Made by a program: the position numbers and the translations under genes. The notes under the pieces are model-generated. The model worked only from the letters and a program-made list of their open reading frames with translations. It was not told the DNA's origin and did not search any database. 32,000 nucleotides of DNA, taken from contig BAAFSQ010000071.1 of NCBI GenBank assembly GCA_054661495.1, positions 1 to 32,000 on the forward strand, in the 5' to 3' direction. Positions 2,081 through 28,706 of this stretch are shown one piece after another (the first letter of the stretch is position 1; the number at the start of each line of letters is the position of its first letter). Origin of the DNA: Zygophlyctis sp. KS116 (lineage: Eukaryota > Fungi > Chytridiomycota).

Positions 2081-4634
<2,554 letters not shown>

Positions 4635-4709
4635 TAGGCAAATGATTATTTTTGGAGATTTTCAATAAATCGGTTACTCGAAAGAAGATAGATGCATTAT
4701 TTTTATAAT

Positions 4710-6653
4710 CTAACGTTGAGCATATGTCAACGCTTTCTCTTTATCTGCATGCGAAGAGTTTTCTGAAACGCTGATTGAAATGACTGTCGACAAAATGGGT
4801 TGATCTCTACCCTTACAAATAATTAGACAAGAAAGCTCGATATTTTGACAATCACCATCAAGACAATCAATAAGACCGTCAGTGACACAATTTGAGCCTG
4901 GAGGCAAGTACGGTATCTAAAATTTTAAAAATAGAGCAATCACCTTTACTATATTTGGTGTGATAATGACTCTGGAAATAGGCTGTATTTTCAGCATCAA
5001 GTGAGCTGCGGGCCAGATTGATTTGTTGGTTGTCCTGATCAAAAGTGAAAATGGATTATAAACTCCAATCAACTATTATCAGTTATCTAAAACTTCAGTT
5101 ACCTCTACGTTAGCTTCTATCAGGATTGGCATCGAAGAATATGGAAAAACCTTGCTTCGATCGAGACAAACTTGCGATAATATATCCATTTTCTGAAATC
5201 TATCGAATATACCTTTATCATTTCAGGATTGATAGACATACCTTTAGCATCGTTTTTCTCCCTTTTGAGACAGTCGACAAAGGCTTTTGATTTCTTAGAA
5301 AATTCAAAATCGAGCTTTTTGTTTGCTATATCATCTAATGAAAGCGATGAATTTCTTTTCAAAATATTAACATTTACGGCCTTGTTTGTCATTATTGAAA
5401 TTAGCGCCATGTCTTCTCCTTTGAAATTCCCAAATCTAAATGCTGAAATTGTGTCAGCAAGATTCAATACAAAAATGATATCTCTTCCATTAAATATTTT
5501 GATATCCTTATTTTCTAATGCAACCATAAATCCAAAAAACTTTTTCTGTTCTATAGTAAAGTTATCTATTTGCAAAATCGGTGACGAGAAACTGCAGCTA
5601 AAAATCTCTTTTCCAATCAGACTGTAACACTTTAAGCAATTATCCATAAATGATGCAGCTATGTAATCTTTTGACAAAATAAATTGAGTAGGATTTTTTT
5701 CGAATTGAATAATTTCGATGCATGAGTTTCTATGATTTAAAAAAATGTTGAGATTACCTTGATATAACATAAATGCATCCATCTCGACACAATGCATAGA
5801 TTTTAAAATCACCAAAGTATGATCCAACGCATTTTATCTGCAAAACAGATGACGAAAGCTGAAATTTTTCTGAAATTAGGTATTTAGGAGGAGACAATAG
5901 ATAAATCTGACATTCTAATGTTCCTACAACGATAATGCTCGGCGAGAATCCATCACTAGACTCCCTTTTAGATAACTTATCTATGGCAGATATGTGAACT
6001 TGAATTGTCCGTTTTATTTCACTACATCTGACATGATCCTGCATGAGAGAAATAGATGAAATAGATGTGAGTTTTTGCATTTGATGAGAAAATGACATGT
6101 TCCCAGATAGCCTATATTTTTTAACTTGTTCAATTAGTGATTCAAAATCTGATTTTCTTTCTAAATTTTCGAATTCTTTCAACTGAGTCCAGAGGTCAAA
6201 TTCTACATCGGACATTGGCATGGGATCTAAAACTGTCCTTAAAACACAAGAGTTCCTATGGTATAGAAATATTGTATCTTTTGATGCTACAGCGATGGCA
6301 GGAATGTTTGACTGATTGTAAGACTCTGTTAATTGAATGGCTGTTAATAGTCCATACGCCTCATCAGATATAATGTCCGAATATATGAATTTTGATCCAT
6401 TAAACACTTTGAAAGCTAGATAATTATCATGTTCTTCCAGAAAGACCAAGTCTGTGGATTTTGTGCCTAGTGTATCTACTAGTATCATATTGCAGTTTCT
6501 GGTAATGTTTACGGAAACATCCTTGGGAAATGCAACAGGTATCCATGGGCAGTCATTATTTTCCTTTTCAGGACTACTATATCTACGTCTCTGATATGAT
6601 TCTCCTGAAACTGCAACTCTTGTGACTGGTTTCGACGGGGGTTTAGCAATCAT
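4710..6653 (-). CDS. BBS1: BBSome subunit BBS1-like, spliced
   Basis: Collinear with BBS1 motifs: FKVFNG, PAIAVASKDTIFLYH, EFDLWTQLK, SIIVVGTLECQIYLLSP, GSYFGDFKIYALCRDGCIYVISR, SAFRFGNFKGEDMALISI, VNILKR, QPILSTVISISVSE. Joins ORFs 5754-6653, 5120-5827 and 4710-4907. Confidence 0.8.
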
Positions 6654-24798: not shown

Positions 24799-26582
24799 TC
24801 ACTTTCTACCATTGATCCAGTAAGTCGTCATTGTACCTTTTCCCTACAAAATTAATAAATAGTAATTACCTTGATTTGCATCACATCAGGCTCACTGCAG
24901 TTAATGTTTGTATTCTTGATCAAGTTATATGTAGTTTCAGAAATATGGATCATCATGGGTTTTGATGAGGACTCCATACGTGATGCAGTGTTCACTGTAT
25001 CTCCGACAATGCACCAGTGAGGATTTAACTCACCCAGAACTCCTGCAGTAATTGGTCCAGAGTTTAGACCAATACGAATCTGAATAGCATCGCCCATAGC
25101 AGTTTTAAAGGTTTTTATCATTTCGATGATATCAATGGAAAAATTTACTGCACGGAAAGCATGATCGGCTGCTTTTTCAGGACAACCGGTCACAGCTAAA
25201 TACGCATCACCAATTGTTTCGACTTTGTATACTCCCCATTTCCTTGCAATGGCATCGTATTCAATCCACAATTTGTTTAGTGTACTCAACATATCTTTAG
25301 TAGATGTCTTTCCAGAAAGTACAGTAAAGTTTGCAATGTCAGAAAAGAATACAGTAACGTTTTCATATTCTTGAGCCTCGGTAGATTTTCCAGATTTGAT
25401 TTGTTGGATTACTCTAAAAAATTATAAAATAAAATTACTCTTGAGGCATCATTCTCTCCAAAAGTTTTTCGGTATTTCCCATTTCAGTTTCCAAATCTTG
25501 GGCAATACCAGACAATAAATCGACTTTTTGATTCTGAGCTTCATCAACCGAAGCATTTATCAAAATCAGGGTCAAAAAGACCTTTGCAACAATGTCAATG
25601 CCTACATAAAGTGCTTCACCTTGACCAAAAGTAATATAGTTATATCTAACAAGACCATATACAACAGGGACTTCAAAATTATTTAAGGAAAACTTACAAC
25701 AGTTCCATGCAAACATGCAAGCTAGTCTTGAAAGTTTTAATGCTGTTTTATCCAAATTACAAGCAGTCTTTCCTTCAATTGCATCAGTAAACATATCATA
25801 GAGTCCAGTAACGACAATGCAATGCGATCCGCAAGAAATGATCAAGCAAATTTCAGACCATGGTTGCTTGAGGATCGAGGCAAGAAAGCCAGTGATGACA
25901 AGAATGTAATCATGAGTCATGGTTCGCTTTACTATCGAAGTATTTCGTGTTACATTTCCAATGAGAGCTATCAAAGATGGGCAGCAAGTTAACCATTCTA
26001 TAAATCGGCCGACATCCACAGGATATCCATTTGAATCCTTCAATGATGGAGATAGTCTCAGAAAATGTAGTACATATGTACTGGTGGCCACAATATCCAC
26101 CAAAAGCAAAACCATCGCTAATCCTTTCTTCTCAGCAGTTTTTGCCGAGTTGTATCCCAAAATGGCGAATCCTATCCCGATAATAAAGGCCGAAATGGCA
26201 CATAAATAACCATAATCGGAAATTCCTCGATCAAACTTTGTTTGATATGAATATTTTGACAATGCAAATGTAGCCAGACCCACAGTTGCCAAAAACCAGT
26301 AGGCGGTTGCGCCCTTTTGATAGCGTGCAAGAGCATTACTCTTTCTACTGCTCTGTTTAGTAGCTTGATCTACTTTATCTCTCCAATTGAGCTTTTTCTT
26401 TGTATTAGCTGTCTGAACTTCATCTAGAATCAGTAATGATTAAAATTACCATAGTTTTCCTCTCTGTGTTTATTTGCTTTACATCCGCAATCCTCACATT
26501 TAAAAGATCCCTTTACAATAGAAAACTCAGTACAATCACAAGCATTGCAAGCACCTCTCATCACCTCATTCATGTCCTTCAT
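24799..26582 (-). CDS. Rhodopsin-guanylyl cyclase A (type Ib 8-TM enzymerhodopsin, CyclOp/RGC family) with N-terminal Cys-rich module
   Basis: Exons 26582-26450, 26423-25698, 25670-25439, 25413-24870 and 24843-24799. TM3 RFIEWLTCCP; TM6 WNCFPVVY; TM7 IDIVAKVF (retinal Lys); linker ending LLERMMP; cyclase FFSDIANFT, KVETIGDAY, PHWCIVGDTVNTASRMES, IKGKGTMTTYW. Confidence 0.96.
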
Positions 26583-26718
26583 ATTTTTTAATGTAAACAA
26601 ACAACAATGGATTGACGGTAGGCGCCACTATGACGCACGATTACTGAAATAGATACCACATGTCTGGGTCTAGAATTACTCATGTCTTCATAAAAAATTA
26701 TTTTCATGTAATGCATAT

Positions 26719-28490
26719 TTATGAATATTCTCTACCGTAAATCCAGTAAGTGTTCATAGTCCCTTTCCCCTTGATCTCCATGGTATCTTGATCAGACAAA
26801 ATAAATCCACTGTCTTTGATAAGTTCATATGTTGTTTCTGATATATGTATATTCATTGCCTTGGAAGTTGATTCCATCCGTGAAGCTGTATTTACTGTAT
26901 CTCCTACAATGCACCAATGAGGATTCAATTCACCTAAAATACCAGCCGTAATGGGTCCAGAATTTAAGCCAATTCGAATTTGAAGGGATTCTCCCGCGGT
27001 TGTTCTGAATTTTTTCACCATGTGAATAATATCTATTATGATTAAGCAGTCGATTCTTACCAAGAGCAAAATTAGCCGCTCTAGCAGCATGGTCAGTCGA
27101 TCTTAGAGGACACCCCGTAACAGCCAAGTATGCATCTCCAATAGTCTCAACCTTGTATACACCCCATTTTTTTGCAATGGCATCGTATTCAATCCAAAGC
27201 TTATTTAAGTTAATGAGCATTTCTTTATTCTGATTATCAGTCAAGATATAAAAATACCGATAATTTTCCTGCCAGAACTGTATAGTTTGCTATATCAGAG
27301 AAGAATACTGTAACCGATTCGAATTCTTGAGCGGTGGCACTTTCACCAGATATGATTTGACTAATGACACTAAAGTTTATAAAAGAAAATTACTCTTCGG
27401 GCATCATTCGACCTAAAAGCGTCTCAGTTTTATCTAAATCTTGAGACATTTCTTCAGCGATTCCAACCAAAACTTCAACTTTGTTGTTTTGTAGCTCTTC
27501 AACAGACGCATTTATAAGTAACATTGTAACAAAAACTTTAGACACAATATCCGCCATAGCAAACAGAAGCTCTCCAATTGGAAAACTAACAAGCTTAAAT
27601 CTAACTGAAAAGAAAATGACTGGAAAGCTGGTCCAAGATAACACAGTTACTCCTCTAGTCACCAGCAATGATAAACGGTCCAGTTTGCACATTGTTCTAC
27701 CATAAATCGCATGATTAAACATCTTAAATAACCCAGATATAACATAAAAGTATGCACCAACAGCTACTGCTAATGAAATATAAGAATAGGGAGAGCGCAA
27801 AATAGCACCTAGGAACCCAGCTGAAAGTAAGATATAATCAATAGCAACTGTTTTCTTTCCATGAGTTATATCTCTTGTTAAGACTGAAATAAGAGAAATA
27901 TATGTTGGACATGTTGCATTCCATTCAAAGAATCTGGCAAAATCTACAGGATACCCATTAACATCCCTTAGACTAGGAGTTAACCGGAAATATTTTAAGA
28001 GATGACTTAGCATTGCAATCATGTTTACAATGATTAGTATTTCACTCAGTTTCTTTCGATCATCCTTGGAGGAGAGGTATCCCATTGTAGCAAAGAATAT
28101 ACCCATGAAAAACACCGAGGATGCATACAAATAGACACCATCACTTATTCCTCTTCCAATCTTTTCTGGACGATTTTGAAAAGAAGTATATGCCCAAATA
28201 CTTGATGTAATCAGCCATATCATTGCAATCCTCCTTTGTGAAGCCAATAAGGCTGCCGTTCGCTGGTTTTCCATGATCTTTACAGAGTTAACTTTTTCCA
28301 TATATCCCTTCTTATTGCTATTTTTCCTACCCAACAATGGCATTTGACTCTCATCCTTTGACGCAATCAGGTTCTTATGTTTTGCAGATTTACATCCGCA
28401 ATCAGAGCATCGATGAGTACCATCAAATGTAAACTCTACACAGGTGCAAGACATACAAGCACCTCTCATGACTTCCCTCTTATCTTTCAT
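26719..28490 (-). CDS. Rhodopsin-guanylyl cyclase B (type Ib 8-TM enzymerhodopsin) with N-terminal Cys-rich module
   Basis: Exons 28490-27394, 27369-27258, 27229-27061 and 27032-26719. TM3 RFFEWNATCP; TM6 WTSFPVIF; TM7 ADIVSKVF; linker ending LLGRMMP; cyclase FFSDIANYT, KVETIGDAY, PHWCIVGDTVNTASRMES, IKGKGTMNTYW. Start placed by alignment with paralog A (MKDxxEVMRGAC). Confidence 0.96.
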
Positions 28491-28706
28491 TCCGAGCCAA
28501 CCGTAAACAAAGGGGTGGAAATCGGACACGGAAAGAATTGACACTTTTTATATGAGTACTCTCCAACATATGATGATCAGTATTATAAATATTTAATTAT
28601 AAGTGATACAGATGGAGTTAATATGAAATATATATTGCAGATCTTAAATCAGCTGCAACGATCATAAGAACCAAACGCCACCACGCCGCCTTATCTTATC
28701 TTCTAA

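Follow-up and report, generated by a model that had tools for sequence, protein, structure and literature searches.

A conserved, putatively zinc-binding N-terminal module of fungal rhodopsin-guanylyl cyclases and its predicted first exon in a Zygophlyctis gene

Introduction

Rhodopsin-guanylyl cyclases (RGCs) have found wide use in optogenetics, and in the field the function of their N-terminus is still under discussion. In the Catenaria anguillulae enzyme (CaRGC, also CaRhGC), split YFP places the N-terminus in the cytosol, and fusion of YFP to the N-terminus leaves activity unchanged (PMC5967339). The Blastocladiella emersonii and C. anguillulae proteins differ mainly in residues 72-170 (PMC5967339), so residues 1-71 can be regarded as conserved, and Butryn et al. 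drew the N-terminus as an autoinhibitory or autoregulatory region and called it conserved (PMC7384201).

Light still activates CaRGC from which residues 1-43 have been removed, and this truncated enzyme is reported to be more active, with unchanged photo-behaviour and no particular differences in its FTIR difference spectra, and the construct 44-626 is the light-activated enzyme of the kinetic work; activity is lost on removal of residues 1-139, and the authors assigned a regulatory role to residues 44-139 (PMC8575461). In a second truncation, Tr64-CaRhGC, current size and light sensitivity are retained and dark activity is absent; this variant is better delivered to the plasma membrane and yields less cGMP in HEK cells (PMC12662207). 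As the truncations of residues 1-43 and 1-64 both keep light-gated activity, whatever lies within these residues is not a required input to the switch. A Cys-rich or zinc-binding description of RGC N-termini was not found in the openly searchable literature; the words cysteine and zinc are absent from PMC7384201 and PMC5967339, and cysteine occurs once in PMC8575461.

Results

A tandem pair of rhodopsin-guanylyl cyclase genes

The window, a stretch of 32,000 nucleotides from the chytrid Zygophlyctis sp. KS116, contains two RGC genes arranged head to tail, RGC-A and RGC-B, in which 136 nt separate the RGC-B stop (26719) from the RGC-A start (26582). Rhizoclosmatium rgc1 and rgc2 are likewise sequential in the genome (PMC12264004). 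The best DNA matches to the stretch are freshwater metagenome runs, and the genome assembly that was searched comprises 12.7 Mb in 1175 contigs. Pfam Bac_rhodopsin and Guanylate_cyc were matched in ORF pieces of both genes, an extension of approximately 85-120 residues precedes the Pfam rhodopsin match in each, and the last helix of each translation shows the D-x3-K motif of a rhodopsin with its retinal-binding Lys. Among solved structures, the rhodopsin part is closest to the Salpingoeca rhodopsin phosphodiesterase (7d7q/7cj3). Both proteins are placed inside the chytrid/blastoclad RGC tree (90 rows) and are new members of the RGC family that carry the family's conserved N-terminal module. 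The features of the locus are as follows.

24799-28490, minus strand: tandem rhodopsin-guanylyl cyclase genes RGC-A and RGC-B, head to tail
26450-26582, minus strand: RGC-A exon 1 (133 nt), from the first in-frame ATG after a stop; the frame closes unless spliced
26466-26582, minus strand: Cys6-His module encoded by the first 39 codons of RGC-A, matched by a 41-sequence profile
26424-26449, minus strand: candidate 26-nt mini-intron, GTAATTTT...TAG, GT..AG, with the consensus and size class of the RNA-verified intron 25414-25438
25439-26423, minus strand: RGC-A exon 2, with variable linker, predicted extra helix and type I rhodopsin (Bac_rhodopsin PF01036, E 8e-17)
25414-25438, minus strand: 25-nt mini-intron at the rhodopsin/cyclase boundary of RGC-A, GT..AG, absent from an RNA contig
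24852-25413, minus strand: RGC-A cyclase exon(s), with a further candidate intron at 24844-24869 (Guanylate_cyc PF00211, E 6e-40)
28374-28490, minus strand: Cys6-His module heading RGC-B, scored at 64 bits by the 41-sequence profile
27394-28490, minus strand: RGC-B exon 1, with module, linker and rhodopsin in one open frame (Bac_rhodopsin E 1e-19)
26719-27369, minus strand: RGC-B cyclase exons, in which 27033-27060 is a candidate 28-nt intron (Guanylate_cyc matches in ORFs 26719-27090 and 26930-27244)
27370-27393, 27033-27060, 26424-26449, 25414-25438 and 24844-24869, minus strand: candidate mini-introns of RGC-A and RGC-B

A predicted first exon of RGC-A

Translation would start at 26582, the first ATG in frame, 16 codons past an in-frame TAG. 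Unspliced, the frame of exon 1 stops a few codons past 26450 (ORF 26430-26600), and removal of 26449-26424 with one base held over lets it continue into the rhodopsin ORF 25435-26292. Exon 2, translated alone, opens with the stretch 'KLNWRDK', which resembles the 'NWKDK'/'SWKEK' that comes after the module in chytrid RGCs. All five candidate mini-introns of the two genes measure 24-28 nt and have the form GTAA...TAG. The module of RGC-A matched the 41-sequence profile at 63 bits and E 2e-16 in the genome search.

The RNA evidence consists of twelve contigs from four metatranscriptome runs, which cover parts of both genes. Record 1 of contig X13, which spans 25254-25597, omits 25438-25414 and bridges the rhodopsin and cyclase parts of RGC-A, showing that RGC-A is transcribed and that mini-introns of the GTAA...TAG class are truly spliced. 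Further contigs on RGC-A cover 25716-26166 in exon 2 and 25040-25371 in the cyclase part. The twelve contigs have no coverage over 26197-26704, which includes RGC-A exon 1, or over the RGC-B module; we therefore infer the splicing and use of exon 1 from homology and from the intron consensus common to the RNA-verified neighbour. The preliminary description of this DNA had proposed a hidden 133-nt exon joined by a 26-nt intron at 26424-26449, and the reading frame, the GT..AG ends and the local consensus all bear this out. RGC-A is thus predicted to start with a real, separately spliced first exon that encodes the Cys/His module.

RGC-B exon 1, contained in ORF 27390-28544 with its Bac_rhodopsin match, is the uninterrupted counterpart of the spliced RGC-A model, and its contiguous sequence stood in for the joined RGC-A product in the analyses, with the RGC-A exons treated separately. 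The cyclase pieces of RGC-B match PF00211 at E 6e-30 and 1e-11. The homologue search returned six metagenome proteins. Three metagenomic orthologues, when read upstream of their prokaryote-style gene calls, have the complete module, beginning with M-[KR]-D, and, like RGC-B, hold module and rhodopsin within one ORF. In one metagenomic relative, module, rhodopsin and cyclase lie in a single uninterrupted ORF of 566 aa, on contigs of approximately 1.75-1.9 kb from four samples; the ORF was probably derived from a transcript, since the cyclase region of a related genomic contig splits over several short gene calls.

Conservation of the module

The RGC-A module has the pattern C-x2-C-x-C-x11-C-x2-C-x-C-x4-H. 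In the alignment of the two window modules, 23 of 38 residues are identical (about 22 had been claimed), and the spacers that follow are of unequal length and barely alignable. The earlier contrast between a conserved module and a variable spacer, read as selection on the module, is upheld. Cys is present in 41/41 copies at each of positions 12, 15, 17, 28 and 31, His in 40/41 at position 38, and Tyr or Phe in 41/41 at position 20; Arg occupies position 9 in 36/41 and Gly position 10 in 32/41. Position 33 is Cys in 27 copies and His in 14, with no other residue, and this restriction of exchange to Cys and His suggests that it is a metal ligand. Cys/His exchange together with a conserved His is typical of structural zinc sites. 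Across the 41 copies the ligand spacing is C-x2-C-x1-2-C-x8-12-C-x2-C-x-[CH].

Occurrence in described RGCs

Named fungal proteins with the module were identified by an exhaustive profile search together with a word-based one, followed by a regular-expression scan and alignment. It forms residues 1-39 of both BeGC1 (B. emersonii) and CaRGC, also heads a 626-aa synthetic construct of the C. anguillulae protein, and is N-terminal in the alignment in proteins of Allomyces, B. britannica, Nowakowskiella, Synchytrium, Gonapodya, Obelidium and Chytriomyces. A Rhizoclosmatium globosum protein with D379, E419, D423 and C488 has the module at its N-terminus; since these residues fit the numbering of PMC12264004, this protein is RGC1. 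Among 94 RGC homologues, 25 bear the module in the annotated N-terminus, and these include both chytrid and blastoclad proteins.

In a tree from which the columns of the module had been omitted, the module is scattered over blastoclads, the RGC1 clade, Synchytrium, Gonapodya and the clade of the window genes. It is absent from all 15 tree rows of the NeoR-type clade (P0233 and the rest), and the Rhizoclosmatium protein with NeoR numbering also lacks it. RGC1, the heterodimer partner of NeoR-type subunits, carries the His variant of the module. Among the 155 best representatives, no other enzyme rhodopsin has the module pattern.

Several module-less rows of the tree adjoin near-identical rows that have the module; their gene models have probably been cut short, as has the ORF-track call for RGC-A. 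Public RGC models were also observed that start inside or just before the membrane part (P0167 compared with P0163, P0199 with P0224, and P0194 with RGC-A); these short models probably miss a short first exon.

The preliminary description had treated the module as one not described for CyclOp/RGC proteins; its absence from known members is not supported, since BeGC1, CaRGC and Rhizoclosmatium RGC1 all carry it. Of the four N-termini that it had named for a profile search (RGC1, RGC2, NeoR and BeGC1), BeGC1 and RGC1 have the module and NeoR does not. In all, the module appears to be an old, conserved and unannotated part of fungal rhodopsin-guanylyl cyclases, and what may be new is its recognition as a discrete metal-binding domain resembling ZF-HD and testin.

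The module beyond the two window genes

The 41-copy profile matched exactly four places in the 12.7-Mb genome, two of them in the window, and each heads a rhodopsin gene. This distribution rules out chance occurrence of the pattern. The other two copies head genes with a Bac_rhodopsin match and no cyclase ORF downstream.

G000:C43:44000-49200 (L017), minus strand: module-bearing gene, ORFs 4423-5100, 3778-4395 and 2784-3563, weak Bac_rhodopsin match (25 bits)
G000:C38:12608-15739 (L013/L018): fourth module copy, encoded by a separate short exon that precedes a Bac_rhodopsin ORF

In L017 the module is followed by a long linker, and an ORF with a protein-kinase domain lies 215 nt downstream on the same strand; the locus is a candidate for one rhodopsin-kinase gene or for two genes. 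No cyclase ORF lies within approximately 3 kb downstream of the gene with the fourth copy. Given two module-bearing rhodopsin genes with no recognisable cyclase, the module would accompany the 8-helix rhodopsin rather than the cyclase.

Outside fungi, proteins of the unionid mussels Sinanodonta woodiana (P0076) and Potamilus streckersoni (P0268) contain six tandem copies with a period of approximately 62 aa, each preceded by R-G as in RGCs, and have no rhodopsin or cyclase domain. Such tandem copies suggest that the module behaves as an autonomous domain. With a mussel protein as query, the homologue search added one further unionid protein only. A weak DUF4599 match of the mussel protein (23.6 bits) lies below the cut-off of 34 and was set aside.

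Fold and family searches

An AF2 model from 5 sequences was unusable (pLDDT 59) and was superseded by a run on the 41-row alignment, with a pLDDT of 77 overall and 82-85 in the core. Against predicted structures, the RGC-B module model matched ZF-HD dimerisation fingers at TM 0.73 (43 residues, 2.2 A) and Testin clusters at TM 0.63-0.64, and an Atlas model of a mussel copy matched ZF-HD at TM 0.70, LMCD1 at 0.60 and Testin at 0.58. TM-scores over 40 residues are weak support for kinship; the testin/LMCD1 likeness gains credibility from two different query models reaching the same two families. The likeness to the Cys-rich N-terminus of testin and LMCD1 that had been proposed from the spacing is thereby recovered by two fold searches (TM 0.58-0.64), with ZF-HD scoring higher (0.70-0.73).

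Searches against solved structures and sequence families gave little. Foldseek against the PDB found no match to the module at E <= 0.001, and VIA-align against 48,161 chains returned one row only, at Z 2.4, so that no solved structure in these searches matches the module. No Pfam model matches the module alone, and the 41 copies yield only sub-threshold matches of zinc-ribbon type. The profile found no PDB sequence when built from 5 copies, and only weak ribosomal and Rpb12 ribbons when built from 41. The sub-threshold sequence matches are to the zinc ribbons eL42, Rpb12, L37e and Rrn7 (E 0.04-2 and 0.001). For the plant finger, PF04770 matched one of the 41 copies at E 0.96 and none of the others, short of the family cut-off; against the whole genome at E up to 10 it found no match, a weak test in which the controls were silent too. 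Atlas feature searches returned nothing usable, or small archaeal proteins below 0.9. Complex prediction with two module copies and four Zn gave a score of 0.00, which is the tool's no-call value and is evidence neither way. The fungal Zn2Cys6 cluster (PF00172; C-x2-C-x6-C-x5-12-C-x2-C-x6-8-C) was rejected, as the spacing of the module is wrong for it and PF00172 is among the Pfam matches of no copy.

Discussion

The reading that we favour, with somewhat better than even confidence, is that the module is a conserved, zinc-folded mini-domain of RGCs for interaction, assembly or localisation that stands outside the core light switch. The module, of approximately 40 residues with Cys5-[Cys/His]-His ligands, would fold around zinc, in a fold resembling the testin/LMCD1 CR domain and the plant ZF-HD finger. 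The four knuckle cysteines of the two C-x2-C pairs would form a zinc-ribbon-like site, and C17, C/H33 and H38 a second site, possibly completed by another residue or chain. The module would hang in the cytoplasm on a variable, flexible linker and serve as a handle for protein-protein interaction, assembly or localisation of the photoreceptor in the zoospore, outside the core switch from light to cyclase. This interpretation draws on the module being conserved, rhodopsin-linked, lost in NeoR-type partners and dispensable for gating, and on the altered trafficking that follows its removal. Zinc binding and an interaction or localisation role are both predictions, and direct regulation of the enzyme would equally be in line with two truncation results, the higher activity after deletion of residues 1-43 and the reduced cGMP output of Tr64.

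A bolder version of the same idea, which we hold only tentatively, is that the module, the testin/LMCD1 CR domain and the plant ZF-HD finger constitute one ancient eukaryotic superfamily, and that the module docks zoospore rhodopsins to an eyespot scaffold, the cytoskeleton or a channel. The cyclase-less rhodopsins may then be docked too, and the module may select subunit pairing, as NeoR-type subunits lack it.

Direct intramolecular regulation, in which the module docks on the cyclase or the linker and damps activity as an 'N-terminal autoinhibitory region', is an alternative reading: Butryn et al. labelled the N-terminus autoinhibitory or autoregulatory (PMC7384201), and deletion of residues 1-43 of CaRGC is reported to raise activity (PMC8575461). 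However, the FTIR spectra are unchanged without these residues and the authors place regulation in 44-139 (PMC8575461), Tr64 has no dark activity (PMC12662207), the linker is long and poorly conserved, and two rhodopsin genes for which no downstream cyclase was found likewise begin with the module, which together make such a regulator unlikely. The light gating of the truncated enzymes, which is unaltered, also speaks against a site that binds iron in a rubredoxin-like manner or senses redox state or oxygen and reports it to the photoreceptor. C-x2-C-G knuckles occur in rubredoxins, and rubredoxin-like domains are found among the weak fold rows, but these score under the ZF-HD and testin rows, and both the conserved His and the exchange of Cys for His point to a structural zinc site; we regard an iron or redox role as improbable.

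The cysteines could instead be an S-acylation patch, binding no metal, through which the N-terminus is anchored at a membrane or lipid body, as would suit a cytosolic Cys-rich N-terminus on a membrane protein whose truncation alters trafficking in mammalian cells (PMC12662207). Such a patch would not need fixed spacing, an invariant His, an aromatic residue and Arg-Gly, would not tolerate replacement of Cys specifically by His, and would not be expected as six tandem copies in two mussel proteins that lack rhodopsin and cyclase, and it is accordingly given very little weight. Least to be expected is that RGC-A exon 1 is unused, either as a relic or because the model was joined wrongly, so that translation would begin further downstream. 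The RNA contigs leave 26197-26704 uncovered, and the nearest relative in the database has its annotated start within the membrane part, but this short version comes from gene calling on an assembly contig, and RGC-A has an unbroken frame, retains the start ATG and all ligand positions, and has an intron that fits the local consensus.

The preliminary description had ranked the module as the best candidate for an undescribed system, a view that is not supported now that known RGCs have been found to carry it. The motif is present there, and CaRGC lacking residues 1-43 and Tr64 are still light-gated, so that the refuting outcome which the description itself had named has largely come about. The RGC-A finding is instead a correct repair of a gene model and a useful domain annotation. 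The first ~40 residues of these proteins appear to form a separate domain, probably one that binds zinc, which is conserved across blastoclads and chytrids but absent from NeoR, and recognition of the module gives a concrete reason for the changes in trafficking and activity upon truncation. The module is also a defined bait for whatever holds the photoreceptor in the fungal eyespot. For annotation, a short first exon has probably been overlooked in many gene models of chytrid RGCs.

Comparison with known systems

The zinc ribbons of Rpb12, eL42, L37e and Rrn7 share with the module two C-x2-C knuckles approximately 11 residues apart; the module differs in its three extra conserved ligands, and all matches to these ribbons lie under thresholds. 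The best fold match is the ZF-HD dimerisation finger (PF04770) of plant ZF-HD and mini zinc finger proteins, at TM 0.73/0.70. The second half of this finger is of the C-x2-C-x-C-H-x3-H type, which is common to the module.

The CR domain of testin and LMCD1 has two Cys triads and then a His, as in the module, with a first triad whose spacing is unlike that of the module. It is likewise small and N-terminal and matches at TM 0.58-0.64 over 38-41 residues with two query models, a likeness that comes from fold search; Pfam has no model of the CR domain. Testin and LMCD1 continue with PET and LIM domains, whereas the module continues with a linker and rhodopsin and has no PET or LIM in Pfam. The half of testin that comprises CR and PET localises to stress fibres (PMC8684727), which is a parallel to the localisation role proposed for the module.

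The closest systems are BeGC1/BeCyclOp, CaRGC/CaRhGC and RGC1, which share with RGC-A and RGC-B the position of the module at the protein start, the M-[KR]-D start, the R-G before the first Cys, the ligand spacing and the aromatic residue, followed in each by a variable linker, an extra helix (a prediction in RGC-A and RGC-B), rhodopsin and cyclase. The RGC1 clade differs in that His replaces the sixth Cys, and RGC-A differs from BeGC1, CaRGC and RGC1 in carrying the module on its own exon. The modules of RGC-A and RGC-B are 41-43% identical to the BeGC1 and CaRGC rows, and by alignment the RGC-A module is the predicted orthologue of the first 39 residues of BeGC1 and CaRGC.
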